A stretch of DNA of 42,103 bases, from assembly GCA_013115145.1 (NCBI GenBank), contig JAAPAO010000294.1:1-42103 (forward strand), given 5' to 3'. Under the pieces are notes generated by a model that worked only from the letters and a program-made list of their open reading frames with translations, was not told where the DNA came from and did not search any database. Each line of letters begins with the position of its first letter. The stretch's first letter is position 1. The stretch comes from Perkinsus chesapeaki ATCC PRA-425 (Eukaryota > Protista > Perkinsozoa). Shown piece by piece: positions 12,301 through 39,630 of this stretch. The position numbers and the translations under genes are program-made.

Positions 12301-15300
12301 CCTACTCATCGATATCGGTAATCTTAAGCGTGTTCATAAGACTTCTCAATCGAGCATCAAACGCCTTCATCGTCCTGGCCTCGATGTACTGCTGTGACTC
12401 CAATTCATGCAAGAACATCAGTGGACCCTCCGCTCTGGCTTTATCAACTCTAAGCAAAAAAAGCTAGGCCTTCTCCTAGGAGTTCGGTGTATCGTCATCA
12501 CTGAATTCTATTGGATGGACGCAAGTTCGATCCCCAGCCCTGCCATATTTCTGCGGAAGACGACTCTGGCCCAGTATTTTAGGCCCTTCTCAACATCCCC
12601 AAAGGGAGAGCTATCGAATGGTGCATATTATCACTGATCATATCCTCTCTAGATCATCGATCATGCACCAAGTGTTGATTAAGCGAGGGTGATATAATGA
12701 ATGAACACTAGTAAGATTCCAGCAATGCTATCATCCATAACGGAACCAATGCCACCCCTACCTTATATAAGCTCTAAGGAAAGCACATACTTGTTGAAGT
12801 ATACCGAGGAAATGTTCAGCCTGTCGAACATTGCCAGGAATAACCAAATGAGATACTCCCGAGACCGCTTCCTTAAGCTCATTAGGCCCGAATTTAAGGG
12901 CACGGATTGATCTGAAAGGAGAGGCAATGTTGAATGACGCCGACAAAGACAATGTTGAGGTAGGGGCGTTCTGTATACGTGGAGACTACACTTTCATATT
13001 AGTCAACACTTCAGGCCATCATTTTACACAGTGTACACTTTTCATGTTTTTTCTACAACTTCCGTGTAAGTTGGAATATATTGATGAATCTAATAATGTT
13101 TTTGTAACATTGCTCTTGGAATATATAATAATTCGACCCTCCAAGCTCATCCGTATTACTCATCCTCTTCAGCCATCCCACCTGATGGTGCTAACCCTCT
13201 CATTAAGTTCTCGACTTCAGCTTTAAGTCTATTCTCATCTACCTTTTTCAATTCAACAACCTATACACCAACCATCACCCTACACCGTGGCCTCCTTCTC
13301 TCTCTACTCACCTCCCTCTGTAGCCGTTTTACGTTACTAGTAGCTCGATCGATTGTTCTGAGATTATTAAATGCATTCCAGTGGAATGATTCCACCACCA
13401 ACACTCAAACAGCATTTCGTTCAAGGGAAACGATTCTCCCTCATCGATCGTTATGCAAATGAAATCTGACCCGATTGCCCAGCGAATAGTTGCCTGAGTT
13501 CGTCTCAATTTCTCGCCTATTCCACCTTAAACTTTCCCATCAATATAAGTCTTTAAAGCTGCTAACTTGCACAAGATACAGTACGCGCAATCTAAGGCGC
13601 GCGTTTGGCGTCATCGGCACAACTAGACCACATATTGGCGACCTGAAATTTTTTGTAGGCACCATCCCAATACTGTTGTTGTATCGTTAAAATACTTCAC
13701 AGAACTTGAATTTTCTCAAAACTTTTTTTCATTGCTTTATGTGGTCTAGTTAAGAAGTTACGCCGGTGAAGGATTGCGCGTACTGTATTCCGAGCTAACT
13801 CGTAGTAAGTACTTGGTAGTTTTCAGATTGAGGACCTGCCCCCCTTCAAGTGCTGCAGTGCCTCCCCATCACCTTCTATCAATCGTAACTGTGAGAGCAT
13901 CCATGCAAATATCATCGATATTATGTGCCTCATCGAATATTACCACAGCTGGTTCGAACCTGCGTGCAAGGATCCTAAAACGGCACCCTTAACCACTACA
14001 CCACATTACTGCTGCTCATTCTCATTATCGGTAATCAACCCAGCTGGTTTCTCCTCTCCTTCCTTTGCCAATGCTCCATGACTCATCGCACCCCTCGAGG
14101 ATTCACCAGCAATCAGTGCAGACGCCGACACTCTTGGATCCAATACGTACCTGGATTCCGCATTGAACTTCTCATATTGGAAAGGATAGGAAAAAGAGTG
14201 GTATAATGCTCATTAAAATATAGTAAGCACGGCGGTCGTAATATGAAAGAGACTGTACTATTTTTTACCAAACCATCGTCGTAAAGCTTCGTCATCTCCA
14301 TCAATATTATCCCAACTTACTGATAGTTGAATACAATAACATCTGCATGCCTCAACAATCGCTTAGTCATATAATACGGACACCATCCCTCCGCTCCACC
14401 AGCTACTCTCAGATCCTCTAAGGTATAAACTCCTGATGGTATCTGACAACACAAACGCTGTCCCACATGACACTGAAACCATCCCATTTTATAATATACC
14501 CAACAAACACATAGCATATCGCCCCCAGTAATATTACCGCGAACTTCTTGTCCTTTGCGTCTTTGCCTTCGATATCTTGATCTCTTCGACCAACACCGCC
14601 AATGGCAGCATCGTAACCCTCAAAGAATGAACAACGATTGGCTGATGATGATGATGATGATGAACTGAGCAAATACGCAATAGCAACAACGCCTAAATAT
14701 CATATCAATATATGTTTCAAATTTATCAACTCACGCTCAATGTGAGTTCGCGTTCACATGTTACACAGTGAAGCAGCAGCAGCAGCTGCTCTTTCGACTT
14801 TGTTAATTTTCTCTATCCGATTGTGTGATATGAAGCGGGTGAGTCAATCTCCCCTCCTCAACATCAACTTATCTCCTCCTCCACCCATATATTACCTTTT
14901 CTTGATAAAGTTACTAGTCATCTCCCTACATTTAATATCTATTTTATCCCTGTCAGCTTGCCCAGCCACATCAGGATGAATGCACATATTGCGCCGAGCA
15001 GACAGGCCAATCCCGAGGAACCTCTGAACAACTTGACATCTCCAACCTAATCAGATATCATCATTCTTACATTCGGTGCCTCCTCCGGTTTCTCCTCAGA
15101 TAGCACTTTATCCCGATAATCAATGACAAGTTTAAGCTCTCTAATGGCTTGGTTCATCTCCGGAACTGTTCGAGTACAATAAACCAGCTTACCCATCTGA
15201 AAACGGCAAACCATTGCAACAGTTAATATTCCGCAATGCGTTACTATCTGAGCTTCACAACTAATATAATCTACAACTGAGATGACAAGTGCCACTTATG

Positions 15301-16421
15301 AAGTGGGCTTTGGTCTTAATCACAACAAGCTGTTTATTAACACTCCACTCTATCCCTCCATTCCGTGTTAATATGATTCATATACCTTTCACTATTAAAT
15401 ATAAGATCCATATTAATATCTTCATCTATAAATTTACGCATCGTTATCGGCTGCTACATCGAGAACTTATACAAAATGATACTGTATTTCGCATCCCCCC
15501 ATTACTCCGCCACTGAGACCTCGTCCCAGAATTCGCCCGAGGAATGCCCCCACATTGCTTTCTATTACCTCTGGATGCGCTATTTGATAACTAGTAACCA
15601 AGCTCATAATAGTTACTGTCTTACCAGTACCAGTAGGCATCTCTATTAATCCTTGACCATGTGATGCATCTAATGCTTGTTTTAAATAATACATATATTT
15701 CACCTACCACCACAACAATAGCATCATCATCATACTTACGAGGAAGGAGTTATACTCTAAATCAATTACAACCCACCACATCTAGTTGAAGTGTCTTATC
15801 AGTGGTGTTGTGTCTATAACCAATAATTACTGAGCAAAATGCTGCTCCTCGATCAATATAATACATAAGCCCGAAACACCACCACCATCCAAGCAACTCA
15901 ACTTCAACATCAAAGGGTAACACGTAAAATCCAGAATCACTTCACTAGCCACATTCATAAAAACCTTCCTGCCGGATGATGAAGCCAAGATAATTTTACA
16001 TACATGTATATATTATATAACTTAATATTTTATACATATTTTATCACTAGCAGCAGCACTCTTCCTTTTATCATTCAGTAAAGGAGAATGGCTGTATTGG
16101 GTTGATATTCAATTGCTCGTAGAAAGTAGGCTGAACCATCCTCTGCAGCAATGGAGAGGATACAATACTAATAGTATTATACTATTATGTCATACTATAT
16201 ATCATTATAATATTGTCTATTTTACTATATATAATCACTATACAACTCGCACGTTTATAAGTATATTTTTAAGACTAACAACGGCTTTTACGAAATTTAT
16301 CATTTCCCAAACTCCGCCGCCTGCCATCCTATCATCCCCCCATTATGACCTGTTCTGGATATATTGCATCATATGGGAATATAACTCTTAAACCATCAAT
16401 ATTAAGATTAGATATACCCAT
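9310..16421 (-). CDS. XPD: TFIIH DNA helicase XPD/ERCC2/Rad3, many exons
   Basis: Exon 1 (16421-16350) reads [24 protein letters not shown]. Walker [10 protein letters not shown]; [12 protein letters not shown]; all four Fe-S cysteine contexts present (NMCIHP, KCREMT, RCSFFE, WCPYY); DEAHNID; [16 protein letters not shown]; [21 protein letters not shown]; KRKKLPPWI. Penultimate exon 9680-9565 [14 protein letters not shown]; probable last exon 9412-9310. If the final intron is retained, the stop is at 9561. Confidence 0.96.
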
Positions 16422-17278
16422 ATAAATAAGGATAATAATAAAGCTAAATTAAAGATAACACTATTATTATCATTAACAAATTCACCAACACAACTGGTAG
16501 AAGAACAACAGGCAACACAGTTGGACCGCCGACATGCCCTTCGAATTGGAACCCACAGCTTTCGCCTATTTACGTAAAAAGTGGTCATTCGTCTAATATT
16601 ACTTACAATATCTTCACTCCAACAATTAGGTTACATTATTTCTATTTAACAACAATTATATGACTCAATAGATATCAGACATCAGTATATGCATATTGCT
16701 TGTTGTTGTATATTTAATATTATTGCTTAATATTTCTCTATTAATATACACTACTCATCCATCCTCCTTCCTTCATCCCAATAAGCTTTGTCATATATAC
16801 CATATTAATACAGCAGTTCAGCAGTGCATCACGTGTGTCAGCACCCAATTACATTTTTATTATTATTTTACAAACTCTCTAATAACTTATCTCTAATACA
16901 ATCTGCAGTTTCACCACCACGTCATCTACCGAAACAGAAATGTCTACGATAAATTCTGCAATATAGTATTTTATTAGCCCGACCGAGAAGTGGCAGTTGA
17001 TGCATATCTTTTGTGGCCTAACCGTTTGGTGTTCCTCCATAACTTATACCTTTATAGTTAAGTCCTTTCAGACACCTATCGCTAAACGTGAAAGGAATCT
17101 TACGATCAATCATACACCTCATGATCGTTACAGCAGCACTTTAGTGATCCAATTCACTTCGATGATGACAGATTAATAATAATATAAACTTAACACTATC
17201 ATGAGGGTAATACAAATAACATCTTAAACAGCACTCATGCATGTCATCATCATCGCCGCCAAATACACTGATAATCTA

Positions 17279-18479
17279 TTATATCGAGTGTAGCACAAAA
17301 CGAGTCCCAGAAATGTTAATAAACAAAGCTGCATCACCATCCGGTTGATCTACAGTGAAGGAAGAATCTTCCGACGAGAACTTGAACACGCGCATGCCCT
17401 CATGATGAAAAGTTAAGACCAAAGGTAAGTCATCCCAGACAGTGCGAGTGATCACACCATTGGACATGCAAATGGTGCAACGCTGTTGACCATGGTTATC
17501 TGTTACGAAGGAGGCCGTAAGCATTAAACCATTTTGGTAAAGACTAGCATAATTGCCGTCCTCTATGCCCATACTCACCGAATTTCTCAATGGCACTTGG
17601 TAAGGTGATGGCCGAGAACGTGACGCTTGATGAGGTGATGCTTGATGAGGTGATGCTTGATGAGGTGATGCTTGATGAGGTGATGCTTGATGAATTGGTG
17701 GTTGGTAAGGTGGTGGTTGGTAAGGTGGTGGTTGGTAAGGTGGTGGTTGGTAAGGTGGTGGTTGGTAAGGTGGTGGTTGGTAATNNNNNNNNNNNNNNNN
17801 NNNNNNNNNNNNNNNNNNNNNNNNNNNNNNNNNNNNNNNNNNNNNNNNNNNNNNNNNNNNNNNNNNNNNNNNNNNNNNNNNNNGGTGGCCCACTCGCAAG
17901 ACGGGTGCTATCATCATTGTGGATGGGATACAGATCAATAGGGGTTCCCCAGTTTATTACTTTGCCGTAGATCCTAGCTTTGAGATACAGTCTCATCATA
18001 GGCCCCTCTCTATCCGACATTCGCTTAGGATTTGTATAACATAATAAGAACCTGTCTTCCTCATCAAGCGTTAAACCAGTCGCTGTGAATGTCTCCTTAA
18101 TTGCATTGAGTCCTGAGCCTTGCCGAACATAACAGCATTGGGATATCCCCTCAGTTAGGAGCTGTGTAGTGTCATGAATTACCTTCTTTTCGCAGTTTAC
18201 ATAGTCAGGTTCTTGATTGTCATTCACGCGTACCTTATATCTTTGTCCTCCCTCTAACACAGCATCCAATGTCACCTCAACCGATCTCAAATACTGTGAC
18301 ATATCCTCAGGAATGCTTTTGGTCACAAAAGTTCCCGAAAGTGTGCTGCTGCTTGCTGTTGAGGATAATATAGCGGCTACGGCGTCGGCATTGGATCCTT
18401 CATGCTTAATACTTCCAAGACTTTTACCACGTACATAAAACATAACCAAAGTTATCAACAAGTCTTTTCCCCTCATCAT
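17279..18479 (-). CDS. Putative secreted two-domain protein with a Pro-rich repeat linker; interrupted by an assembly gap
   Basis: ATG at 18479 starts a signal-peptide-like MMRGKDLLITLVMFYVRG, and the frame stays open to the gap (17785-17883). After the gap, the frame with (YQPPP)n(HQASP)n continues about 115 aa to the stop at 17279. No recognisable family motif. Confidence 0.65.
17619..17784 (-). repeat. Two adjacent 15-bp coding tandem repeats (YQPPP x5-6 visible, HQASP x4-5)
   Basis: Plus-strand units ggttggtaaggtggt and gcttgatgaggtgat. The array runs into the N-gap. Confidence 0.95.
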
Positions 18480-18548
18480 CTTCTCGGCCAATTACAATAA
18501 CGTTAAAGAGGTGATCAGGGAAAAGGAGACACCAAAATATCAGACAAT

Positions 18549-18774
18549 TTAATGGCGCGCGAGAATTCTCAACCTGCCGTCTCGGTCCAATAATAAACGG
18601 AAATCTCTTCATGTGGGGTATTGTTCAACGATCACCATTGGACTCTCCGCGATGTGATCGATGGCACTACTGCATCACCTATAATTTAAGACCTCAAAAA
18701 TGCCACAATACAATAACCAAAGTGATGATCAGTGAAGAGACATGATTCCTATTAATTAATGGCGCGCGAGAATT
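18549..18774. promoter_or_regulatory. Duplicated upstream segment with an identical 19-bp motif TTAATGGCGCGCGAGAATT
   Basis: Exact copies at 18549-18567 and 18756-18774, each preceded by a similar tacaataac...gatcag...gagaca segment. The first copy lies about 70 bp upstream of the ATG at 18479. Confidence 0.45.
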
Positions 18775-19206
18775 GCCAGTACGTCTGGCCTCACCTCAAA
18801 ATAATACTTCTTCCTTGATAGCTCCGAATAATCGATACGAGCAAGAAATTGAATCTTCAACGATTAATTGAATATTAATTTTCTTATATAATAACGGTTT
18901 CTTACTGCCTCCTCAACACGGCATTAATTTTATTATTTTCTATAAGCCTATTATATTACCACTTTCCCAACACACTCCGGTGGTCACAATAAACTTCACG
19001 GCACTTCCTCTCTCCAATATCATATCTCATCCGTTCGATGCAGCACCGGCCATTCGATCAGAAGTCCGTTATTATATCTATTCCCTTCTAACTTTACTTC
19101 CAAAGGCCCTCCGAGGGCCTCTTTAAGTATTGTAAAACATATCAAGTAGGATGATGCAACTATCCTGCGACCTTCCCCCTTTTGTCTCCTCACGCCACAT
19201 TGATAG

Positions 19207-19430
19207 CCTTAGCCTTCCCTTCTAACAATATCACTTCAAGCCTTAGCCTTCCCTTCTAACAATATCACTTCAAGCCTTAGCCTTCCCTTCTAACAATATC
19301 ACTTCAAGCCTTNNNNNNNNNNNNNNNNNNNNNNNNNNNNNNNNNNNNNNNNNNNNNNNNNNNNNNNNNNNNNNNNNNNNNNNNNNNNNNNNNNNNNNNN
19401 NNNNNNNNNCTTAGCCTTCCCTTCTAACAA
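19207..19430. repeat. 34-bp minisatellite spanning an assembly gap
   Basis: Unit ccttagccttcccttctaacaatatcacttcaag starts at 19207, 19241 and 19275. Gap at 19313-19409; a partial unit at 19410-19430. Confidence 0.95.
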
Positions 19431-19595
19431 CCAGCAGTAGCAGGAAATAGCTAATTAATAATTCTTAACACCCCACTGGAACCAAAGACAATGGCTCAAT
19501 ATGAGGAACTTATTGGTCATAGTGGTAAGGAGGAGGAGGAGGAAGAGTTCTCTCTTGTTTATTATACATTAACGTAGTTCTTATTGACGTAGTAG

Positions 19596-21655
19596 TTAGG
19601 CAGTCGCTTGGACCGGAGGGGGGCCTTCATCGATATCCATCTGACCACCTGACTCATCGGCGACGGCGGGCTCTTCAAATACTGTGCCTAAAAAGGTAAA
19701 ATACCGTATCAAACTGTAATGTGTCATTAATGATGGAATTAAAGTAAAATACGATATGAAATTATACCCCGAGTTATTATTACATGTAGTATCCTCCTTT
19801 GACCATTGGGCCACCAGTGAAACTCTAAAGACTGCCATTGGAATGCCGAGAAGCTTAACAAGCTGGCATTGCTCAGGAGTGAGCGCCTAAAAATAAAAAC
19901 AATGTCTCCTCCAAGGATCGAACCCACGCCCTTTCGATTGCCAACCACCCACCTTGCCCGTTTTGCAAACTTCATAATCGCCCATCAGCCTGATCTTGCC
20001 ATTAACCAGTAGTGTCGGCAATCCCAATTTCCTAAGGAATGGCTCTTGACTGTGAGGGAACCGAGAGAGGGCATCATCGCCAGCTTCCTGAAAATACACA
20101 AGTCGAATCATCGTCATCGTCATCCACCGCTGCAGTAGCTGATCACTCACCAAAGTGATATCTGCCGTAGATATGCATCCACTCCTTGCGAAATTGGCTT
20201 GTTCATGATTGGCCAATACTTCCTGAAAATATACATACCTTTAGGGCCAAGGAGTCTTCAGTGTCCTCCTCTGCGAAACGACGCGAAGACTGAATTTAAA
20301 ATATGCGGAAATCTAAGAACCACTTCGAGGACCAGCTTTGGAAGGATCTCCTCAGCAGTGATGGCTATCATGCCAGGTGATATTACAAGTCCGCTGCAAG
20401 ATGTAATAGTTGAGCTGGCAACAAATGAGATAGAATTACAATATAAATACAACCAAATGAATCCAGTTAAACAATACAGACAATGAATCCTCATATGGAC
20501 CAACTTATCCTTGTTACGCAACAACACTAACAAACAAACCCCCTCAGCATCGCATTTCCTTCTACTGTTTACGAAGAGTCCACAATTCTAATACCGCGTC
20601 CAAGTCCATTATTATTTATACCAAACTTCCTTCACAAACTCACCATCACATGTTCAGATGTCATATCAGTAAGCAGCAAGCCAACCTCTCCACTAAGATA
20701 CTCCGTTAAACCATGAATGCCTGAGAGGGGAGGGGGCTTATACCATTCAACCTTCCACATATCTTACCGTCTTGACACTCAGATTCGGCATCTACTCCCA
20801 AAGCCACTTGCATAACCTTGTTTCTACCACAGAAAAGGCGGCCTAACAAAAATCAACAACACTCCGATACGTGCCTCTATACCGATACACACCATTTCAG
20901 GTAGCATGGTATTATTATCATTAACATCACCCCGTCGAAAATGACATGTCTGAGCTCGTAGTGAAGTCACAGGAGGAAAGTCAAACGAAATCGGATCTAA
21001 TCTCTATCACGCAATTAACATTCTGTATAGTGTGACAAAATCACACTCAAGCACCAACTTTTCAAATTCACCACACCGCAGTTTATGATTTTACGAATAA
21101 TCATACCCGTCCAATCATTTGCATGATGGTAAGTGACAGAGTTCGGTTAGCAATTTCTCAGAGATGACAGCATGAGTATTTCCAACATTTTCTTTAAACT
21201 AACCTTCTTATATCACATCTATCCCCAGAACTACGCCACCTCTATCGCGGTCTCCATTGTAGGAGATCTAAAATTCTTGAGTATTAATTTCACCATATAT
21301 GATACTAAATATCTATAATTAATATAATTTCCCCGACAATGAACCCGCAATGATATCTGCCTCTTCAGTGAAAAATGTCGTACTCTTTGAAGAGGACAGT
21401 ATTACTCCCTATAGCTCTACCTGGTTTGAGATCGTCCCGGAGCGCCTTCAACAAATTGTTACGTTGATTCTCCAGTTTAAGTACGTAAGCGAATCTAAAG
21501 ATGCAATAAAAACTGACATGTGTTTTATAAATTAGTCACCTGAACTTTTCCAAGCACTCTCTAATCTCCTCAATGGCCTTATCCTTCCTATCACGAGTCT
21601 GCCTCTTGGACACCTTGGTGAGGTTAACAACTTGATTACGCTTTGACTTAGGCAT
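19596..21655 (-). CDS. MRT4: Ribosome assembly factor Mrt4 (uL10 paralog), multi-exon
   Basis: [17 protein letters not shown] (ATG 21655), [83 protein letters not shown], then an acidic tail ending in TAA at 19596. GT-AG introns join these in frame. Confidence 0.95.
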
Positions 21656-21760
21656 ATGGACAGCAGTCTGTGGAGTACGATGAAATAGGGACACTTAACA
21701 CAACAAATGCAATATTAAAAATACCAAAACATGTTGGCTAAATCCTCCTCAATAATAATA

Positions 21761-22292
21761 TCAACCATTATTTCGCAGAGGCCCCAGGTCGGCAGGCGAC
21801 AAGTCGGCCAATACGTGTGCTATAGAAGTATTAATGATACCGATTCTACCACGAATCATCACATAATTGAGTATTGTCTGAGATGCACGCTTTAAGCTAA
21901 GATATCTAGGCCGCTTACCGTTATCCTTCGGCAGGAACATCCCACTGAAATAGTAGTTGGAATGCAACAAAGGTAAGATACCATGAAGTCCGCTCACAAA
22001 GCCGGCGATCCAATACAGATACTCGGACATTGGGTTGTGCATTCTGATAGAATTTCAGTAAAATACATCCTACCATAAACTCACTTCATCATATACTCAG
22101 CCAGATCGAAATGGTCCTCCAAGTTGTGGGCCATTCTCTGGCGAGAGCGACTGAAGAATGTGCGCTTGACCGTGTTCCCCACCACAGGACGGCGGCTCGC
22201 TTGTACCTATCAGACGTAGCCTGTCAACCTCATCGAAACCTATCCCTTACGAATTGACGGCCAGCGTTACGAGCAACAGCAGATAGGATCAT
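21761..22292 (-). CDS. Small spliced protein with an N-terminal mitochondrial-type presequence, unknown function
   Basis: ATG at 22292; introns 22250-22207 (44 nt) and 22084-22044 (41 nt) give MILSAVARNAGRQFVQASRRPVVGNTVKRTFFSRSRQRMAHNLEDHFDLAEYMMKMHNPMSEYLYWIAGF. The 3' exons are ambiguous. Confidence 0.55.
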
Positions 22293-23364
22293 CTCAAATA
22301 GAGGACTTTCGTGCTTGGTCCGGAGAACGTGCCGAAGTCACATCTCTGGGCGCACGCTTTTGAGACGCAAATCTCGCTCGCCATAATGATCGATTAATTA
22401 TATTAGCTATTTGAGAGGTTTATTCGTTAAAGTGCAGTCGTTGAATGTTGTTGTTTTTGAGGCTAGCTTGCCACGGCTGAGACGCTAATGGTCGTTTTAA
22501 GAGGCCTTCCAGAGCTAGCCTAGATGGTAATCGGAGTTAGGAAGCCACAATAGTATATTGTTACATTAGTGGTGCCGTAAAACTATCGAACATCTTAATT
22601 GCAATAATGATGATAAGTATTAGATAGGGACAGCTGAGCACCTTCTTGAAGGTTGTGTGCTGATACCAATTATTGACAGTATTATTACTGAATAATAGTA
22701 ATTAGGCAGTGATGATTTATTATTATCTATGAACGCTTGGCTGAATATGATGATGCCAACTTTATGCCATTACTGAGCCTAAATACATAACGCTTGAAGA
22801 ACGCTTCGTAACGCTACGTAAGAAGAAAGCTTGGTCAATGGTAGTGTATTTACCATTCGTTGTCATTGTAAGATTAGACAATAGAACTTGGCTCAGTAGA
22901 TCTTACGAGGTCTAGAGCAGCAGTGGCGATAACATTTGACTAAAATGTTCTTGTTAAGCATCCACCAGTATTGTGAACGAAGAACGGTTGCTGCGGTAGC
23001 AAGAGGCAGTCGCATTGTCCGTTGTCAATAACATTTAATTTACATGAAGCTTTAAATCTTACAATAGTAAATACATTGATCTTGTATTGAGTTATTATTA
23101 GTATAAAACAGTCATCTTGTGCTTGTGGAGCAATAGCGATCAAGCGGGAAGCAACTTGACCTGTTTTGCATCCTTGGAGTGTTCCAACCTGAGTATCTTC
23201 GCGCCGAATTGATTTGGGCGAATATCTTGGCTCGAACCATGCAAGATTCTCGGAGCTCAATTCCGTGTGCCACGTAGTATCTTCGAGTACTCGTATGTTG
23301 TCCCATATTATATTTGATAATAGCTTCTGTAATAGCTGTAAGATTGTCTGTTTTTCTTCGTCTT

Positions 23365-24525
23365 ATGAGCATCGATCGGAAATGGCATCGTAAGCTGTCC
23401 CCATATCTCCACCCTTGTATTAAAGTAAACCCATTATGTGTTCAAAGCCAGACAGCCAAGACCGTCCTTATGGTTATTATATGGTACGCGGCTGCCACTT
23501 TCTCCAACACATTCTGCAAGAGATTGGTATCCCTCTATAAGGTCTCTCCACTTACTTTGACCATGGTCGATGCCGTACCGGCTCTATTGCTGCTCAAAAG
23601 GGACCCAAAGTCTCGGAAGATTTACCGGGACAACTGGAAGGCGTTGCTGGTTATTTCACTCTTCGCCACGAGTGCCACTTTGCTTCACAGGATCTCCCTC
23701 ACATACGCGCATGTTTCGACGATCCATACGGCTAAGGCAACTCAACCGTTGATATCTGCGGTGCTGTCGGGGGTGTTCCTAGGGGAGCATATTACCGGGG
23801 AGATGGCTATGTCTTTGGTATTGATAGTCGTCGGTGTGGTTATGGGCACTTTGAAGGGTAAAGGCCCTAAGGTGGCTGACCAACTAGAGCCATCGACCGC
23901 AGCTGGAGTTACACTGGCTCTTTGTGGGACAGTCTGTACTGCTATAAATGGTATTAATATGAAGAAGATATGGCATAATGATAGGGAGATAACCAAGAGC
24001 ATGATCTTCTCCGTTTCACGGACGATTGCCGCATGTATATTCTTTCCGGTGTGGCTCATCAGAGACGTCCCCAAGATCCGCGATGGTAGTCTAGGTAACC
24101 CCTTGGATGGCCAGACGGCCCTCGCCTTGGCACTGTACTCTATTGTTATGGTCACTCAGCACCTCAGCTCTCTATCAGTCCTACACGTGCTCTCTCCAGT
24201 GAGCCATTCGGTCCTTAATGGACTCAAGCGCGTGGTGGTGATAGCGGTGTCCTGTTATATTTTCGGCAACTCTTTGAGCTTTACTAATTGGATAGGCATT
24301 GGGATTTGTACGGCCGCTGTTATTTGGTACTCGAGATTGAAAATGGCTGCTCCTAAGAAGAACGAAGGATACTCTGCGGTAGAGATGACCGGCGGTGCAA
24401 TCGTGGGGTCGGATTCTGATAATGGTAATGAAACTATTGCGAGCCGACGGAATCCTCCATCTCCGGAAACGAGCGATAATGACAGTCCAGAAGGCCAGTT
24501 GGAAAGGTTGGACAAGATCGTGTAG
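23365..24525 (+). CDS. Triose-phosphate/nucleotide-sugar transporter family (TPT, SLC35E-like), intronless
   Basis: About 10 hydrophobic helices with IWY...N...K, VSTIHTAKATQPLISAVLSGVFLG and LSPVSHSVLNGLKRVVVIAVS, all TPT-family motifs. First ATG at 23365. Confidence 0.9.
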   Translation: MSIDRKWHRKLSPYLHPCIKVNPLCVQSQTAKTVLMVIIWYAAATFSNTFCKRLVSLYKVSPLTLTMVDAVPALLLLKRDPKSRKIYRDNWKALLVISLFATSATLLHRISLTYAHVSTIHTAKATQPLISAVLSGVFLGEHITGEMAMSLVLIVVGVVMGTLKGKGPKVADQLEPSTAAGVTLALCGTVCTAINGINMKKIWHNDREITKSMIFSVSRTIAACIFFPVWLIRDVPKIRDGSLGNPLDGQTALALALYSIVMVTQHLSSLSVLHVLSPVSHSVLNGLKRVVVIAVSCYIFGNSLSFTNWIGIGICTAAVIWYSRLKMAAPKKNEGYSAVEMTGGAIVGSDSDNGNETIASRRNPPSPETSDNDSPEGQLERLDKIV

Positions 24526-27802: not shown

Positions 27803-29191
27803 ATGTCGTTTGATTCGGACCGGCTGCTGCTGCTGCATTCAGGATTGACTCCTCGCTTTCAGACCGGTCATTCTCTGCCATCACAGAGTATGGCAATGGT
27901 CAGCGATCTCCCCTATGAACTCAAAGGCGTTCAGACCTGCGATCTGATCCGTTATTGGCCGCTGAAACGGCATAGTCGAACGAGCCACGAGTGTGATCTT
28001 CATACCAAATCGCGGCCCGTGAAGAGCCTGGATATGTTTATCAGTCACACTTGGTCCACTCCTCCCTATGTCAAGTTCGGTTGTCTGGCGCTGCGGTGCA
28101 ACACAATGTGGGCGTTTGTGTTGGCGTTGGTGACTGGGGTTACGATGCAGTCCTTGGAGATGCCAGTTGCATTCATTTTTGTGGCCATGTGGCTTGCTCT
28201 CTTAGTTGGTTATGCATTTGGCGGGTATCTTTGCTTTGATAGGAGAACCATTTTCTACGACCAGTTCTGTATCCATCAAAGCAATGAAAGAAAGAAACTC
28301 GAGGGCATTCGAAACATTGGAAATTATCTGGCTCGTTCTGATAAGCTTGTAATTTTCTGGAGTGCCGACTACAACGAGCGATTATGGTGCATATTTGAGC
28401 TAGCTTGTTTCCTGAGAACTGACGCTTCTCGGAACGTCGAGATCTGGCCCCTCCTCATCCTGGAGAACAGAGTCCGTATAATGTCGCTGCAACAGCTTTA
28501 CTGGGCACTGCGTATCGCTGTTGGTGGGAGTGGTTTGGTTCCAGGATGGATTGTGGACTTGTTATTCTCCCTCTATACCGGCTACTTCTGTCTGTTCATC
28601 GACGGTAAACCCCGACTGAAGCTTCAAAGAGATCTCACTACAATCAGCGCCAAAACACTGCACTGCTACTTGCCTGCTGATAGGGTTATGATAATGGAGC
28701 ATATCAACCGTTTGTACGGCGACTTCGAAACTTTTCGTGAAAGTGCTAAGGCGCTGTTTGCGCATCTATTCAGTCAATGGGGAGCCAACGAGTACTCCTT
28801 GAGAATTACCTTGGTTACAGCGTTCCCTATGATCTGCGCTACAATGCTAACTGGGAGGATGATAACTGGCATAGTTGTAACGGCCTTGCGCATCTTGCTC
28901 CATATTATTTTCTATTGTATTTACGGTACCGGTGCTGTTCTTGGATGTTGTTCGATGGGCGCTAGGAACGTGTGCAGATTTGGATGCTTCTGCATGTCGG
29001 TTTTGCACTCGTTGGTTCTCACTAAAGTGTGGAAGTTTGAGGATTCCTTTACTTCCAAGCCGGGTCTTGGCATCTGCTTCGTTGCTGTTATGGTTCAAAT
29101 GATGGTTATTCTTTTCCTTAAGAAGATATTATTGCTCTTAACACAAAGACCTCATAGATACGTCGACCACATGTGTGAGTGGCTTTTATAA
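27803..29191 (+). CDS. TIR-like domain multipass membrane protein, copy 1 (462 aa, intronless)
   Basis: DMFISHTW, a two-helix hydrophobic hairpin, IFYDQFCIHQ, LVIFWSADYNERLWCIFELACFL (Glu199), then about six further TM segments. Confidence 0.85.
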   Translation: MSFDSDRLLLLHSGLTPRFQTGHSLPSQSMAMVSDLPYELKGVQTCDLIRYWPLKRHSRTSHECDLHTKSRPVKSLDMFISHTWSTPPYVKFGCLALRCNTMWAFVLALVTGVTMQSLEMPVAFIFVAMWLALLVGYAFGGYLCFDRRTIFYDQFCIHQSNERKKLEGIRNIGNYLARSDKLVIFWSADYNERLWCIFELACFLRTDASRNVEIWPLLILENRVRIMSLQQLYWALRIAVGGSGLVPGWIVDLLFSLYTGYFCLFIDGKPRLKLQRDLTTISAKTLHCYLPADRVMIMEHINRLYGDFETFRESAKALFAHLFSQWGANEYSLRITLVTAFPMICATMLTGRMITGIVVTALRILLHIIFYCIYGTGAVLGCCSMGARNVCRFGCFCMSVLHSLVLTKVWKFEDSFTSKPGLGICFVAVMVQMMVILFLKKILLLLTQRPHRYVDHMCEWLL

Positions 29192-29461
29192 CGATGAAAT
29201 GACAGTGAATGCAACACCTTGTGTAACTCACGATGCTTTGGCGTCGAGGCAGGTGGATGCTTTCCGTTATTGTAAATAGGCGGAGAAATCCGTTATTATC
29301 ACTTTAACCATGGTTCTCGTTCGAAACCAATTCAGTTGTAGCATTATCACGTGCACGTGGAAGACTGTCCACTGTTAACGTATAACTGAGTTTCGACCTG
29401 TACGAGTTTTTTCGTTTATTCAAAGAGGAAATCGATTGTTTCTATCTCAGAGTTTCCTTTT

Positions 29462-30832
29462 ATGCGCCAAACTTGTGATGCCCGGGAAATGTCGGGACCA
29501 TCTAGACCAGGCATTGTGAACGGCGACCGCAAACATTCGTCTGTGAACACAGCTGATCTGCGCGGAATCGAGGCGAGAGATCTCCTGTGCGTCTGGCCGC
29601 TCAAGCGAGATACGCGCCGCCGGAGCCACAGTGATCTCTACAAGCGCTCTAAAAGTGTGGAGATGCTACACGTTTTCATAAGTCACTCATGGTCAGCCAG
29701 TCCATTGGTAAAGTATGCGGTTCTATCGTTTCGTTATAATACCCCATTTGCATTTTGTGCATCTTTCTTAACATTTATTTTCCTCCGTCTTTGGGGTGTT
29801 GGTGATGCTCTATGCTTTATTGGTATGTGGATTGGTCTAGTTTGTGGATATCTTTGGGGAGGTCGAGCTTCATTTGATCGAACACTTTTATTTTTCGATC
29901 AATGTTGTATCCACCAAGATGATGAGACTAAAAAGCTCGAGGGTATCCGACATATAGGTGATTATTTAACAAGAGCTGAAGGCTTTGTCATCTTTTGGAG
30001 CCAAGACTACAACACCAGACTGTGGTGCATCTTTGAGCTCGCCTGTTTTCTCCGCGTAAATGGCCCCGACAACCTTGAAGTCTGGCCTCTACCAATCTTG
30101 GAGCACCGTTTCGTAATAGTGCTCTTCCATCAGTGCTACTGGGTGGTTTTCTCTATGTTACACCATCCGCACTACGAGCTACTGCTTGATATTGTGTACA
30201 CTACTGTGACTGGCCTTTATTGCCTCTTCATTGAAGGCCGACAACGCGTGCGTATTCAGCGGGACGTAAATCATTTGGACCTCTCAAAGTTGGAGTGCTC
30301 GCTCGATTCTGATAGGGAAATGATAATGGCGCATATTCGTCGAATGTACGGCGGCTTTGATGAGTTTAGAAGCTTCGCTGAAAACCTGTTCGCGGGTTTT
30401 CATCACCAATGGTCTATCAACGGTTACACTTTCCGTAACATTTTTGTAACATGTTTTCCGTCTATATGCGTGTCCGTGCTCAACGGCCGTATTCTTACAG
30501 CTGCCACGATAACCTGCGGGAGAACTGTCTTACTTATCTGCTTTTACACTATTACTTACACTGCTGTTCGGCTGGGATACACGAGCTCCCTTGCTCGTAT
30601 AGTGTGCCGGTCCCTTTACCTACTCTGTGGAGTTGTTCACGCTGCTGCGATCGTCTGGGTCCGGCATGTCGAGAGCTCCTTCTTGGAGGCTACTTCGTAT
30701 ACGTCCGAATACATAGTGATATGCCTCATAATAGAGATGGGCGCTGTAATGTTGCTTGAGAAGGCCCTGGGGCTGATGACCTACCCTCCTCACGCGTACA
30801 TCCTTCAGATGTGCAACTTCATCGATATGTAG
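29462..30832 (+). CDS. TIR-like domain multipass membrane protein, copy 2 (456 aa, intronless)
   Basis: HVFISHSW, TM hairpin, LFFDQCCIHQ, FVIFWSQDYNTRLWCIFELACFL (Glu192). Colinear with copy 1. Confidence 0.85.
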   Translation: MRQTCDAREMSGPSRPGIVNGDRKHSSVNTADLRGIEARDLLCVWPLKRDTRRRSHSDLYKRSKSVEMLHVFISHSWSASPLVKYAVLSFRYNTPFAFCASFLTFIFLRLWGVGDALCFIGMWIGLVCGYLWGGRASFDRTLLFFDQCCIHQDDETKKLEGIRHIGDYLTRAEGFVIFWSQDYNTRLWCIFELACFLRVNGPDNLEVWPLPILEHRFVIVLFHQCYWVVFSMLHHPHYELLLDIVYTTVTGLYCLFIEGRQRVRIQRDVNHLDLSKLECSLDSDREMIMAHIRRMYGGFDEFRSFAENLFAGFHHQWSINGYTFRNIFVTCFPSICVSVLNGRILTAATITCGRTVLLICFYTITYTAVRLGYTSSLARIVCRSLYLLCGVVHAAAIVWVRHVESSFLEATSYTSEYIVICLIIEMGAVMLLEKALGLMTYPPHAYILQMCNFIDM

Positions 30833-31875
30833 CTGTCATCAGCCACGTTGAAATATTGTACTACTTTAATGCTTCTTATTCTATATCTTCTTTGATGTAG
30901 AGTTATGAGTGGCGAATGGATACTCGGTGACTTGGTGACGATAAAGCTCTTGAGTAAAGAAGACGCTCATTCACGCGTTATACGCCGTTTGACCGAATGC
31001 GTCGCTAGCTGGTTGCATTCTTATGACAGTGGTCGAAATACTTGCCTCACAATTCTAGGTCGAATTCTTGTCATATAGAGCATCCTCCCAGCACCATTAA
31101 CGGAGCTACACCTTCAGGGAGTCTTTTTCGTTTACAGGGTAAATATGTTCACCAGAAGGGACGGCAATTTGGCGATGGCGCGGAATAGGAAGTAGAATTG
31201 TACGAATCAGGATACTTTATTATATACTCTACTGTGAGGCTCATAGCTTCAACTTGAAGGAAGAATCTTGCTGGTGCGTCGCTCGTGGGATTTAAGACGG
31301 TGAGAACCTGACTTGTTTCTGGAAGGGTAACTATCGACACTGTTGACCCGAAACATGTTCAACTAAGTCGACTCAACTTTCACGCCACCTCCGAGGAAGA
31401 CGTTGCTGATGCTTCGGAGCGAAGAACGATTAAGTATTGATGATATAGTCTACATCGTTTAGGCATCTCAACATCTAACTACAACTTGGTTTTGTGACAC
31501 GAATGGCATGCAGCGCGATTGCATGTGATTGATGAAGGCCTTGAGGAGTTGTCATGTCTTTTGGGGGGCCTTGGAGGAATGGGGCTGTCACCGTGTTAGA
31601 CTGCATCATCGAAACTCGGAAGCCCAAACAGATGTTTTCATTCGTGATATTGCATAGTTTAATCATCGCATCGTTTTAATTTACATTTATTCGACCACCA
31701 CCGCCAAATCCACGTCTCATCCGTGTACATGTGTCCGATGTCCTCATCCGCGAATTAAATTTCTCAAAGGCTTCAGCTATACATACTATTTGCACGCACA
31801 CTCCTGGTGGCACGCATGCGCAAAGTTGCCTGCTGCGAAGAAGCGCGATCTACCAACCGTGGTGAGTAGAGCAGT

Positions 31876-33201
31876 ATGAGTGCTCATGTAGCACGGCGAG
31901 ACAGCGGCCCGCTCGGATATGATCTCAGGGGTATAGAGGCTCGCGACATCCTTCGCTTCTGGCCGCTACAGAGAGGACCATCGAGGAAGAGGAGTCATAG
32001 TGAACTATATTATCATTCAAAGCCTGTGCGACACTTGCATGTTTTCATAAGTCACTCATGGTCAGCCAGTCCATTGGTAAAGTATGCGGTTCTATCGTTT
32101 CGTTATAATACCCCATTTGCATTTTGTGCATCTTTCTTAACATTTATTTTCCTCCGTCTTTGGGGTGTTGGTGATGCTCTATGCTTTATTGGTATGTGGA
32201 TTGGTCTAGTTTGTGGATACCTTTGGGGAGGTCGAGCTTCATTTGATCGAACACTTTTATTTTTCGATCAATGTTGTATCCACCAAGATGATGAGGCTAA
32301 AAAGCTTGAAGGTATCCGACATATAGGTGATTACTTAACAAGAGCGGAAGGCTTTGTCATCTTTTGGAGCCAAGACTACAACACCAGACTGTGGTGCGTG
32401 TTCGAGCTCGCTTGCTATATCAAGTCGGCTAAGATACCCTCCGTAGAGATCTGGCCAATACCGATTCTACAACGCAGATTCGTCATTATGACCATACATC
32501 AGCTCTACTGGGTTCTGGTATCTCTAATCCAAGGGCCGATAGCACGTCTCACTATAGATGCCATTCACGTAGCGGCTACTGGTTTATACTGTATGCTAGT
32601 TGATGGCAAGGCAAGGATAGAGTGTCAGATGCTGTTGAGCTCGTTTGATAGCTCGGCCTTGAAATGCTATATACAATCTGATAGAGAAATGATAATGCAA
32701 CACATAAACAAGCAGTACGGAAGCTACGAGGAGTTCCGAAACCATGCCGAGCGCATCTTCTCAAGACTTGACCAGCAATGGGATTGGAACAGTTATACTT
32801 TCCGTGTTGTACTATTAACGTGTTTTCCTACAATATGTTGTTACCTCATTACTGGACGTATTCTCACCCCGATGTGTATCACCTGTTTAAGAGTAATATT
32901 GCTAATATCGTTTTATGGCGTAGCTCTGTCATTTGTACTACTTGACTTTGTCTCTCCCCATGCCCATAAGATTTGCCGAATGGCATGCGTATTCGTAGCG
33001 CTCTCACATTTTTATACAATACGTTACGTAAGTAACTTCGAGGACGGATTGCTCGCAACGGGTCCCTACAGAATGTGGATATTTCCGTTCGCGATAGGTC
33101 TCGAGATGGTTCTAGTAGGCTTACTGAAAAAAGTGCTCTGTCATATGACCTATACCCCACACATTTATATGGCTAAGCTTATTGACTTTATAAAGTCTTG
33201 A
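31876..33201 (+). CDS. TIR-like domain multipass membrane protein, copy 3 (441 aa, intronless)
   Basis: HVFISHSW, TM hairpin, LFFDQCCIHQ, FVIFWSQDYNTRLWCVFELACYI (Glu177). Colinear with copies 1 and 2. Confidence 0.85.
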   Translation: MSAHVARRDSGPLGYDLRGIEARDILRFWPLQRGPSRKRSHSELYYHSKPVRHLHVFISHSWSASPLVKYAVLSFRYNTPFAFCASFLTFIFLRLWGVGDALCFIGMWIGLVCGYLWGGRASFDRTLLFFDQCCIHQDDEAKKLEGIRHIGDYLTRAEGFVIFWSQDYNTRLWCVFELACYIKSAKIPSVEIWPIPILQRRFVIMTIHQLYWVLVSLIQGPIARLTIDAIHVAATGLYCMLVDGKARIECQMLLSSFDSSALKCYIQSDREMIMQHINKQYGSYEEFRNHAERIFSRLDQQWDWNSYTFRVVLLTCFPTICCYLITGRILTPMCITCLRVILLISFYGVALSFVLLDFVSPHAHKICRMACVFVALSHFYTIRYVSNFEDGLLATGPYRMWIFPFAIGLEMVLVGLLKKVLCHMTYTPHIYMAKLIDFIKS

Positions 33202-34968: not shown

Positions 34969-36274
34969 ATGGCTGTTTCAACCGCTGCTCTTCATCTGCC
35001 ATCTCGTGATGTCCTGGTTGCCTGCGCCTTTCAACTGTTCCTTTCATTCAAGCCATCTGAGCCTCATCTTACCACTTACTTAAGAGAGACTAAGTCATTC
35101 ACAGCTGCTGAGATCAATGACCAGATATATGTGACCTGCACTTATGCAGGTCTCGTAATGCTCCTCGTCATTGGCCTTATGGCCGAGTTCATCGACTACA
35201 AGCTCTGTATTGTGCTGGGTGCCCTAGCGAGACTTTTCACTCGAATGGTTCTTCTACTTGGAACAACAGTATTCCAAATGCAAGTAGCTGAAGTAGCCTA
35301 TGCTTTTGGCTCCGCCATGGAGACCATATTCAACAGCTATTTATTCTGCATTGTTGATGATAGTTCATTTGTCAGAGTCGTAGCATTGGTGCAAGCGTGC
35401 AAGCTAGTGGGAAAGTCATTCTCATCTATCCTTGGTGACATTCTTCATGACGTCTTCGGTTGTTCGCTCCATTCACTCTTCTGTATCTCTGCAGTATCCG
35501 TTGCTATCGCTTCCGTATTGAGCCTCGCTCTTGGTCGAATTCACCGATCGTGTCCTTCTCGACCGCGCGATGTTCTCAAGACGATAAAGCTCGTCTACAG
35601 TAACATGGGATACCTACCCATGGTTGTTTGGTGGTTTGGGTCCTTCGCATGTTATAATCTTACATATGCCTATGAGCCGTCTCTATATGATGCTATGATG
35701 GCCGAGTCCAATGCGCCCGACGTGAACGGTACCGTTATCGCTCTCGCTCAGGTAATATCACTCTGTTGTCCTCTCGCTTAAATGACTTTGTTTCCTTCAG
35801 ATTTGTTCGGCAATAGCCTCCTTGGCTCTGTCTTCCCACAAGCTAGCATCTTTATCCAGCAAGAGCCCCCAACGGTTCTTGTTGCTTGTCGGTTGGCTTG
35901 GCAGTATATCTGCTGTCGTAATGGCCCTGCCTAAAGCACTTACGGTTATGTGTTTTGGATTTGTATTTTTTCTAAGCTTTACAGCTGTCTCTAATGCGTT
36001 GGTTTCCGCGGAGACAGGCCGTGTCGTGAAGTCCACAGGTGCCACCGAAGCGTACGCTTTTATGGCTATGTGCAATACTTTGTTGGCGATAGCTGTTCAG
36101 ACCTTTCTCACCTGGCTCTTGCTCTCATTATTGAAGCTTGATATACGCAAGCTCTATGATATACTTATGATCGTGCAGCTGTCGATGATAACTCTGTACT
36201 CCCTTTCACTTATAATATCATCTTTAGTCTCTCACAGGAAGGTGAGCTCTTTAACGGAGAAGTTCCTAGCATAG
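34969..36274 (+). CDS. Reduced folate/thiamine carrier family (SLC19-like MFS transporter), two exons
   Basis: FLSFKPSEPHLTTYL and MQVAEVAYAFGSAMETIFNSYLF match SLC19 motifs (FRPSEPFL..YL; MQ..E..YG...A.E..Y.SYI). A 49-nt intron at 35752-35800 joins the two ORFs in frame; about 11-12 TM segments. Confidence 0.85.
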
Positions 36275-37025: not shown

Positions 37026-39630
37026 ATATGATTATGGCAGTATCACTTGTTGTTCAACTGCTTTTCCGAACTTGGTACGGTTTACTAGGGTATGAATATG
37101 GTAGCATCACTTGCTTTTCGGAACTTGGTACGGTTTACTAGGGTATGAATATGGTAGCATCACTTGCTTTTCGGAACTTGGTACGGTTTGCTAAGGTATG
37201 GATATGGTAGCATCACTTGCTTTTCCTTACTTGTTACGGTTTACTAGGGTATGAATATGGTAGCATCGCTTGCTTTTCGGAACTTGGTACGGTTTGCTAA
37301 GGTATGAATATGGTAGCATCACTTGCTTTTTCGAATTTGATACGGTTTACTAAGGTATGAATATGGTAGCATTACTTGTTGCTCAACTGCCTTTCTGAAT
37401 TCGGCACGGTTTACTAGGGTATGAATATGTTAGCATCGCCTGCTTTTCGGAACTTGGTACGGTTTGCTAAGGTATGAATATGGTAGCATCGCTTGCTTTT
37501 CGGAACTTGGTACGGTTTACTAAGGTATGAATATGGTAGCATCACTTGCTTTCCCGAATTTTGAATGGTGTACTGAGGTATGAATATGGTAGCATCACTT
37601 GCTTTTTCGAATTTGGTACGGTTTACTAAGGTATGAATATGGTATCATTTCTTGTTGCTCAACTGTTTTCTCGAATTTGGTACGGTTTACCAGGGTATGA
37701 ATATGGTAGCATCGCTTGCTTTTCGGAGCTTGGTACGGTTTGCTAAGGTATGAATATGGTAGCATCACTTGCTTTTCTGAATTTGGTACGGTTTACTAGG
37801 GTATGAATATGGTAGCATTACTTGTTGCTCAACTGCTTTTCTGAACTTGGTACGGTTTACTAGGGTATGAATATGGTAGCATCGCTTGCTTTTCGGAACT
37901 TGGTACGGTTTGCTAAGGTATGAATATGGTAGCATCACTTGCTTTTTCGAATTTGGTACGGTTTACTAAGGTATGAATATGGTAGCATTACTTGTTGCTC
38001 AACTGCTTTTCTGAATTTGGTGCGGTTTACTAGGGTATGAATATGGTAACATCACTTGCTTTTCCGAATTTGGTACGGTTTACTAGGGTATGGATATGGT
38101 AGCATTACTTTTGCTGGATTTGGTACGGTTTACTAGGGTATGGATATGGTAGCATTACTTTTACTGGATTTGGTAGGGTTTACTAGGGTATGAATATGGT
38201 AGCATCACTTGTTGCTGAACTGCTCTTCGAATTTGGTACGGTTTACTAGGGTATGAATATGGTAGGATTACTTGCTTTTCCGAACTTGGTACGGTTTACT
38301 AGGGTATGAATGTGGTAGCATCACTTGCTTTTCCGAGCTTGGTACGGTTTACTAGGGTATGAATATGGTAGCATTACTTACTTTTCCGAACTTGGTACGG
38401 TTTACTAGGGTATGAGTATGGTAGCATTACTTGCTTTTCCGAACTTGGTACGGTTTACTAGGGTATGAATATGGTAGCATCACTTACTTTTCCGAACTTG
38501 GTACGGTTTACTAGGGTATGAATATGGTAGCATCAATTGCTTTTCCGAACTTGGTACGGTNNNNNNNNNNNNNNNNNNNNNNNNNNNNNNNNNNNNNNNN
38601 NNNNNNNNNNNNNNNNNNNNNNNNNNNNNNNNNNNNNNNNNNNNNNNNNNNNNNNNNTTCTTTTCCGAACTTGGTACGGTTTACTAGGGTATGAATATGG
38701 TAGCATCACTTGCTTTTCCGAACTTGGTACGGTTTACTAGGGTATGAGTATGGTAGCATTACTTGCTTTCCCGAACTTGGTACGGTTTACTAGGGTATGA
38801 ATATGGTAGCAGTGCTTGCTTTTCCGAACTTGGTACGGTTTACTAGGGTATGAATATGGTAGCATCAATTGCTTTTCCGAACTTGGTACGGTTTACTAGG
38901 GTACGAGTATGGTAGCATCACTTGCTTTTCCGAACTTGGTACGGTTTGCTAGGGTATGAATATGGTAGCATCAATTGCTTTTCCGAATTTGGTGCGGTTT
39001 GCTAGGGTATGAATATGGTAGCATTACTTGTTGCTCAACTGCATTTCTGACTTTGGTGCGGTTTACTAGGGTATAAATATGGTAGCATTACTTGTTGCTC
39101 AACTGCATTTCCGAATTTGGTACGGTTTGCTAAGGTATGAATATGGTAGCATTACTTGCTTTTCCGAATTGGTACGGTTTGTTAAGGTATGGATATGGTA
39201 GCATCACTTGCTTTTCCGGACTTGGTACGGTTTACTAGGGTATGAATATGGTAGCATTACTTGCTTTTCCGAGCTTGGTACGGTTTACTAGGGTATGAAT
39301 ATGGTAGCATTACTTGTTGCTCCGAACTTGGTACGGTTTACTAGGGTATGAATATGGTAGCATCACTTACTTTTGCGAACGAGGTACGGTTTACTAGGGT
39401 ATGAATATGGTAGCATTACTTGTTGCTCCGAACGTGGTACGGTTTACTAGGGTATGAATATGGTAGCATCAATTGCTTTTCCGAATTCGGTGCGGTTTGC
39501 TAGGGTATGAATATGGTAGCATTACTTGCTTTTCCGAACTGGTACGGTTTACCAGGGTATGAATATGGTAGCATCACTTGCTTTTCAACTGCTTTTCCGA
39601 ATTTGGTACGGTTTGCTAAGGTATGAATAT
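37026..39630. repeat. 53-bp satellite (with 50- and 64-bp variants), about 45 units visible, spanning a gap
   Basis: Consensus ggtacggtttactagggtatgaatatggtagcatcacttgcttttccgaactt. The 64-bp variant carries an 11-bp ttgctcaactg insert. Gap at 38561-38657. Confidence 0.98.

Follow-up and report, generated by a model that had tools for sequence, protein, structure and literature searches.

A 42,103-nucleotide contig of Perkinsus chesapeaki ATCC PRA-425 (JAAPAO010000294.1, assembly GCA_013115145.1), referred to here as the window, contains a tandem array of three co-oriented, stop-free open reading frames (ORFs), g1, g2 and g3, which encode paralogous membrane proteins (Table 1). Each protein is predicted to carry a TIR domain that is probably split twice by transmembrane (TM) hairpins. 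The g1 protein shares 40–41% identity with those of g2 and g3, which are 58% identical to each other, and no further copy was detected in the window by tblastn with each protein. The motifs FISH[ST]W, F[FY]DQxCIHQ, KxEGIxxIGxYL, VIFWSxDYxxRLWCxFELA and C..DR.MI..HI...YG...F are found in all three. The initial annotation of this stretch had listed the same co-oriented intronless ORFs and motifs, with a retained glutamate numbered E199, E192 and E177; the coordinates, every motif and the three Glu codons were recovered exactly. Among named proteins, the closest are annotated as hypothetical and come from Perkinsus olseni (66–69% identity), and FOL46_008487 of that species is the positional orthologue of g1 (66% identity). 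Orthologues or paralogues of the array genes are present in both P. olseni and P. chesapeaki.

The sequence similarity of the family points to TIR domains. TIR_2 (PF13676) was the sole Pfam family for the three window proteins at E ≤ 10 (E 5.6e-4 to 0.11). TIR_2 was also matched by 19 of 90 homologues (E < 0.01, best 7.5e-6) and TIR by five, and the one Pfam match besides these families was DUF1275, in a single member. When the family profile was searched against all Protein Data Bank (PDB) sequences, six of the eight matches were TIR chains, and 12 of 13 in another search; the matches included AtTIR, Cat1, RPPT/RPP1, IL1RAPL, RPS4, SNC1 and TLR2. HMMER aligned VIxWS.DY..RLWCxFEL on xxVVS.NY..SSWCLDEL, which places the invariant Glu on the Glu of WCLDEL or WCWDEL, the catalytic residue of plant TIRs. 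Two weak pieces, one of betaA (vFlSH on VFLSF) and one C-terminal, also aligned in the order of AtTIR. S81, W84, D153, R193, W195, C196, E199 and D293 (g1 numbering) are invariant in 90 of 90 homologues at ~20% identity. Such retention of W-x3-E together with D153, R193 and D293 argues for catalysis, as judged from the alignment.

AlphaFold2 models of g1 were built with the 90-sequence alignment. The whole protein was predicted with a mean predicted local distance difference test score (pLDDT) of 84.1 and a predicted template modelling score (pTM) of 0.83, and the domain model (residues 70–330) with a pLDDT of 92.3 and a pTM of 0.86. Foldseek with the whole model returned mostly ABC-transporter noise, with TIRs at E ~1, and with the domain model the top 15 matches were all TIR. 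When the 988 chains proposed by Foldseek were compared by VIA-align, ranks 1–29 were all TIR (Z 6.3–8.3), spanning residues 72–340. In a Foldseek-independent search of 48,161 representative PDB chains, ranks 1–9 were again all TIR (Z 8.3–9.6): SpbK (9.6), MyD88 (9.1), SARM1 (8.9), TRR-2 (8.9), IL-1RAcPb (8.8), RPP1 (8.5), RPS4 (8.5), ThsB (8.3) and IL-18Rbeta (8.3). These nine align over 97–133 residues, and eight of them over 112–133. The next matches were nucleoside 2-deoxyribosyltransferases, which have the same fold (Z 7.3–8.3). The predicted structure thus shows the flavodoxin-like alpha/beta fold of the TIR superfamily (Pfam clan STIR), which has a parallel betaA–betaE sheet. Because the top ranks are all TIR and the sequence evidence agrees, the assignment of the g1, g2 and g3 domain to the TIR fold is secure for a prediction.

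The models also indicate where the membrane helices enter this fold. Known TIR structures align over model residues ~72 to ~336–340, or 4 to 249–261 of the domain model, and the fold is probably split by hairpins at two places, between alphaA and betaB and between betaD-alphaD and betaE. The domain extends over ~250 residues, inserts of 46 and ~63 residues included, instead of the contiguous 125–170 residues of a TIR domain. Because the TIR alignments cross both hairpins into the C..DR..YG..F segment, this segment is probably the betaE/alphaE part of the TIR globule and not a separate module. In this part C288 is near-invariant and D293 invariant in the 90 homologues, and G306 and F311 are also conserved. 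Conservation is highest in the soluble TIR pieces (54–74% amino-acid identity versus 31–66% for the hairpins and the C-terminal bundle), and the C-terminal four-helix bundle is the least conserved part of g1. In the model, the conserved element at residues 36–77 packs before betaA and is not part of the stretch to which known TIRs align.

Membrane topology was derived from hydropathy, AlphaFold helices and Lys/Arg counts over the 90 homologues. Since each insertion is a helix pair and the tail has four helices, all the soluble parts should lie on one side of the membrane. The far-side loops have only 2–7 residues, with a mean of 0.03–0.33 Lys+Arg, and Lys and Arg abound in the segments on the TIR side. 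The positive-inside rule then predicts that the TIR domain faces the cytosol. The short far-side loops leave no ectodomain, and the predicted eight-helix protein differs from the TLR and IL-1 receptor layout of an ectodomain, a single TM helix and a C-terminal TIR.

These models bear out much of what the initial annotation had read from the letters: two, two and four hydrophobic helices, a TIR fold, a two-helix hairpin between betaA/alphaA and betaB, the retained alphaC Glu, and both TIR halves on the same (predicted) membrane face. Its picture of a membrane hairpin inside the TIR domain needs extension, as a second hairpin probably interrupts the fold and the C-terminal soluble segment, taken there as a separate piece, probably belongs to the TIR domain.

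Table 1. Features of the g1–g3 array; residues are those of the g1 protein
Feature	Window position	Strand	g1 residues	Description and basis
g1	27803–29191	+		462 aa, stop-free ORF; split-TIR eight-helix membrane protein
g2	29462–30832	+		456 aa paralogue, stop-free ORF
g3	31876–33201	+		441 aa paralogue, stop-free ORF
N-terminal element L.G.....D....WP	27908–28033	+	36–77	Conserved; strand 40–44 and helix 45–51, pLDDT ~95
TIR piece 1	28034–28093	+	78–97	betaA (MFISH, 78–82) and start of alphaA (88–97); DSSP of models, HMMER piece
Hairpin 1	28094–28231	+	98–143	Helices 88–117 (alphaA into TM1) and 122–143 (TM2); pLDDT >90, hydropathy
TIR piece 2	28232–28450	+		betaB, BB-loop region (DQFCIHQ), alphaB, betaC (LVIFW), alphaC (RLWCIFEL), betaD; TIR_2 profile positions 43–105, PDB profile alignments to AtTIR, Cat1, RPP1 and TLR2
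Elements of TIR piece 2				Model: betaB 149–151, alphaB 162–177, betaC 182–186, alphaC 194–205 (W195, E199), betaD 212–216
Glu199 codon	28397–28399	+	199	TIR catalytic-Glu position, W195-x3-E199; invariant in 90 of 90 homologues
Hairpin 2	28451–28639	+	217–279	Helix 217–239 directly after betaD (alphaD position); helix 246–279 returns
TIR piece 3	28640–28789	+	280–329	Beta bridge ~286; helices 291–305 and 308–326
C-terminal four-helix membrane bundle	28790–29143	+	330–447	Helices 330–350, 353–379, 385–414 and 422–447
Glu192 codon (g2)	30035–30037	+		
Glu177 codon (g3)	32404–32406	+		
Gene-conversion tract, g2 side	29669–30045	+		377 bp, 97.1% identical to g3 side
Gene-conversion tract, g3 side	32038–32414	+		377 bp, partner of g2 side

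To define the family, an exhaustive profile search was run over 1.84 billion cluster representatives (50% identity clusters). It returned 4,623 clusters at E ≤ 0.001, the weakest of which may include ordinary TIR proteins, 2,616 at E ≤ 1e-10 and 632 at E ≤ 1e-30; no more than 7–9 proteins came up in word-indexed searches for homologues. The members that carry names belong to P. olseni, P. chesapeaki, Symbiodinium, Durusdinium, Cladocopium, Effrenium and Crypthecodinium, consistent with an expansion in dinoflagellates that the initial annotation had mentioned. In Durusdinium a run of near-identical copies lies on one contig with adjoining accession numbers. ESM Atlas clusters of the same whole-protein shape (TM-score 0.72–0.73) are mostly labelled haptophyte or Perkinsozoa, labels that are automatic and cover few members each, and haptophytes probably also carry the split-TIR family. 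A betaA-to-betaB spacing of 75–100 residues and RLWCxFEL are found family-wide. Many Symbiodinium models in AlphaFold DB clusters join the module to kinase, EF-hand, VPS29, peroxiredoxin-like or ABC domains; these are either true fusions or gene models merged from tandem arrays.

Paralogues at other Perkinsus loci stand singly, lack introns and have unrelated, housekeeping neighbours, so that a multi-gene system with partner genes finds no support. The array had been put forward as a candidate immune system, and this proposal was not sustained, with neither an ectodomain nor a conserved partner gene found. The same TPT/EamA-type transporter gene lies upstream of g1 and of its P. olseni orthologue. 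The tandem array itself does not appear to be conserved in P. olseni, as the 2.8 kb of contig available downstream of the g1 orthologue contains no further copy. In P. olseni (L002 11612–13315), an EF-hand (AIF-1-like) gene is found directly downstream of the family member P0030 and may be incidental; the neighbours examined at two other loci, L001 and L004, gave no EF-hand match.

Between g1 and g2, g3 or the P. olseni orthologue, the proportion of synonymous differences (pS) is 0.83–0.99, which is saturated, and that of nonsynonymous differences (pN) is 0.17–0.48. With synonymous sites saturated, dN/dS is not computable for most pairs and only pN << pS is given, which, like the homologues within Perkinsus, speaks against chance ORFs. 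In the TIR and hairpin regions of g2 and g3, pS is 0.43–0.46 and pN 0.18–0.25, the lowered pS being due to a conversion tract. This g2/g3 tract starts at betaA, ends just past the Glu codon and holds a 179-bp perfect run, and the flanking coding DNA is ~50% identical. That g2 and g3 have a nearly identical TIR module is thus due to recent gene conversion and not only to selection. A conserved enzyme module beside a divergent remainder had been taken as the pattern of immune receptor clusters, a sign that loses its force here because the g2/g3 near-identity comes from the tract.

For transcription, contigs from three small runs were available, whose RNA label is a guess. Contigs from these runs are 100% identical to 27978–29278 (g1) and 29614–30131 (5' half of g2); the spacer, the upstream DNA and g3 are uncovered and no splice joints are seen. 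Such a pattern is consistent with g1 and g2 transcripts that are not spliced.

Taken together, we give slightly better than even credence to a stand-alone eight-helix membrane protein whose membrane-threaded cytosolic TIR domain would cleave NAD+ under the control of its helices and be used in stress or infection. In this model, alphaA would run on as TM1 and TM2 would lead back to betaB; the helix after betaD would run on as TM3, TM4 would lead back to the betaE/alphaE part, and the last four helices would follow. Three points would then anchor the domain on the membrane. Both insertions appear to replace helix-to-strand loops, which in the flavodoxin-like fold are found on the edge away from the catalytic one, where the strands have their C-termini. 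Because the insertions are on that opposite edge, the edge with the BB-loop and W-x3-E would point to the cytosol, away from the membrane, as judged from fold topology. Homology makes cleavage or cyclisation of NAD+ the most likely chemistry; the domain would then either hydrolyse NAD+ or act as a cyclase that makes ADP-ribose-type signals. Since alphaA and alphaD are continuous with TM helices in the model, regulation through the membrane helices is plausible, and the activity could be set by their packing or lateral clustering. Self-association of known TIRs runs through the helices with which these membrane helices would be continuous. Most likely, stress or infection would trigger a signal or the depletion of NAD+, an immune or cell-death role that we infer by analogy.

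Several observations weigh against this reading. The TIR_2 scores of the three proteins are 20.8, 15.6 and 13.4 bits, below the cut-off of 28, and cover profile positions 42–105 only, so the profile check proposed in the initial annotation gave TIR_2 as the sole family but at a sub-threshold level. No full-length TIR profile match is seen because of the insertions. In its structural check the fold was TIR-like, with weak Foldseek E values (best 0.047, on the domain model), as ~100 inserted helical residues break the alignment. VIA-align Z scores of 8–9.6 are only modestly above the level of that tool for chance arrangements. In the model, betaE is a single bridge residue, and TM3 of g1 contains three Arg and is of moderate hydrophobicity. 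The placement of E199 in the active site comes from alignment of sequences, and the RNA label of the contig runs is guessed. An immune role draws no support from these data, since neither an ectodomain nor, at the Perkinsus loci examined, a recurrent partner gene was found.

The protein could instead be a housekeeping synthase, a membrane TIR that makes messengers of the cyclic ADP-ribose (cADPR) or NAADP (nicotinic acid adenine dinucleotide phosphate) type, which would mobilise Ca2+ for growth, secretion or mechanosensing. Such a physiological role is a serious rival, even if we place it on the unlikely side. It would be compatible with the conserved catalytic motif, with a cytosol-facing TIR that has no ectodomain, and with Perkinsus paralogues that are single, sit among housekeeping genes and in one case adjoin an EF-hand gene. 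A further point in its favour is that no CD38-type gene is known in these lineages. In the three window proteins, the Rib_hydrolase profile of the CD38/ADP-ribosyl cyclase family gave no match at E ≤ 10. cADPR-Ca2+ signalling is described in dinoflagellates (PMC9959387), and Toxoplasma is reported to have ADP-ribosyl cyclase activity (PMC8490419, citing Chini 2005). However, thousands of clusters with tandem arrays, and fast paralogue divergence with gene conversion, fit conflict-type families better than one housekeeping enzyme, and there is no apicomplexan member among the named matches.

The same fold-search ranks leave room for a TIR that does not catalyse at all, because the TIRs of MyD88, the IL-1 receptor family and TLRs score equal to enzymatic ones. 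Here the domain would serve as an assembly module as in TLR/MyD88, nucleating a signalling platform or regulating an eight-helix channel or transporter, and the large membrane part of 8 helices would suit this. We regard such a scaffold as clearly unlikely, since W195-x3-E199, D153, R193 and D293 stay invariant at ~20% identity in the pattern of an active site, and at the sequence level the closest matches are TIR enzymes of plants and bacteria. An enzyme of the same fold and another chemistry, either nucleoside 2-deoxyribosyltransferase-like or nucleic-acid-directed (for example a 2',3'-cNMP synthetase), would agree with the transferases ranking right after TIRs; RNA and DNA are, moreover, substrates of some plant TIRs. 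It is nevertheless very improbable, as all the sequence similarity is to TIR families and none to deoxyribosyltransferases. Returning to the membrane-threaded NAD+-cleaving TIR, its boldest form would be a new class of membrane-integrated TIR enzymes in which the TM bundle gates NAD+ cleavage through alphaA and alphaD, either as a long-missing source of cADPR-type Ca2+ messengers or as an intramembrane-sensing antiviral death switch in perkinsids and dinoflagellates; we hold this form to be quite improbable.

Around the array, the TPT/EamA-type transporter gene occupies 23314–24525 upstream and a folate-carrier gene 34969–35781 downstream. A 53-bp tandem repeat array (~46 copies, 80% matches) extends over 37059–39586, with a 64-bp variant at 38971–39158; it looks like a satellite, and the surrounding stretch is T-rich with positive GC skew. 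In-frame tandem repeats of 15, 30 and 45 bp at 17596–17783 lie inside minus-strand ORFs (17279–18491) without Pfam match and may mark a repeat-containing coding region. The region 12000–22000 has a low GC content (0.36–0.43) and strongly negative GC skew, to −0.30 at 14–16 kb. From 24 kb onward the skew is positive, unlike in that region, which suggests a change of coding strand or repeat content.

TIR domains play a central part in the immunity and cell death of bacteria, plants and animals. To our knowledge, the TIRs studied so far are all contiguous soluble domains, at most tethered to the membrane by a helix outside the domain. TIR helices that continue into the membrane would, if true, be a new coupling of membrane events to NAD+ chemistry. 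The new element is the predicted interruption of the TIR fold by membrane hairpins; the TIR likeness itself was already known, because UniProt automatically names a few members 'TIR domain-containing protein'. No split TIR is described in the literature searched on Perkinsus, Symbiodinium and haptophyte TIRs, a coverage with most subscription journals outside it, and the supplement of one relevant TIR paper lists no entry from Perkinsus, Symbiodinium or Emiliania. In an atlas of eukaryotic TIRs from 2026, whole eukaryote-only clades are given as uncharacterised (PMC13142454). In the haptophyte Gephyrocapsa (Emiliania) huxleyi, multi-TM TIR genes respond to virus infection (PMC12489294), and their membership in one family with the Perkinsus proteins is only possible. 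Very many members of the family occur in the dinoflagellate symbionts of corals and in a parasite of shellfish, and probably also in haptophytes that form blooms.

Among known systems, the HET domain has a motif string, WIDxLCIxQxD ... vWLG ... W..QEL, that resembles FFDQCCIHQDD ... VIFWS ... LWC.FEL of the Perkinsus proteins, and HET clusters came up in ESM Atlas searches at low TM-scores (0.25–0.29). The fungal HET domain (PF06985) was nonetheless rejected, with no Pfam match for the three proteins at E ≤ 10 or for the 90 homologues at E ≤ 0.01. HET proteins are also soluble, unlike the Perkinsus membrane proteins.

Plant TIRs (AtTIR/AT1G72930, RPP1, RUN1, RPS4 and SNC1) are the best sequence matches, with fold Z scores of 7.8–8.5. 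Their xS..Y..S.WC..EL, which includes the catalytic Glu, aligns to VIFWS.DY..RLWC.FEL, and their betaA FLSF to FISH. However, plant TIRs are soluble and contiguous (~160 aa), and occur alone or fused to NB-ARC-LRR, whereas the Perkinsus TIR has two hairpins inside and four TM helices after it, in proteins without NB-ARC or LRR domains. SARM1, AbTir, SpbK, ThsB and Cat1 have the fold and W-x3-E in common with it (Foldseek probability 1.00 for AbTir). SARM1 and the bacterial TIR NADases are soluble, activated by filament or oligomer formation, and have no TM helices inside the domain, unlike the Perkinsus TIR. TIRs held at the membrane on the cytosolic side, as predicted here, are found in TLRs, IL-1 receptors and TirC of the slime mould Dictyostelium, a TM-tethered, toxic and active TIR NADase (PMC13142454). 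TLRs and IL-1 receptors carry a large ectodomain, which the Perkinsus proteins lack. In all three systems a single TM helix lies outside an uninterrupted TIR, whereas in the Perkinsus proteins the TM helices are predicted to be continuous with the helices of the TIR domain itself.

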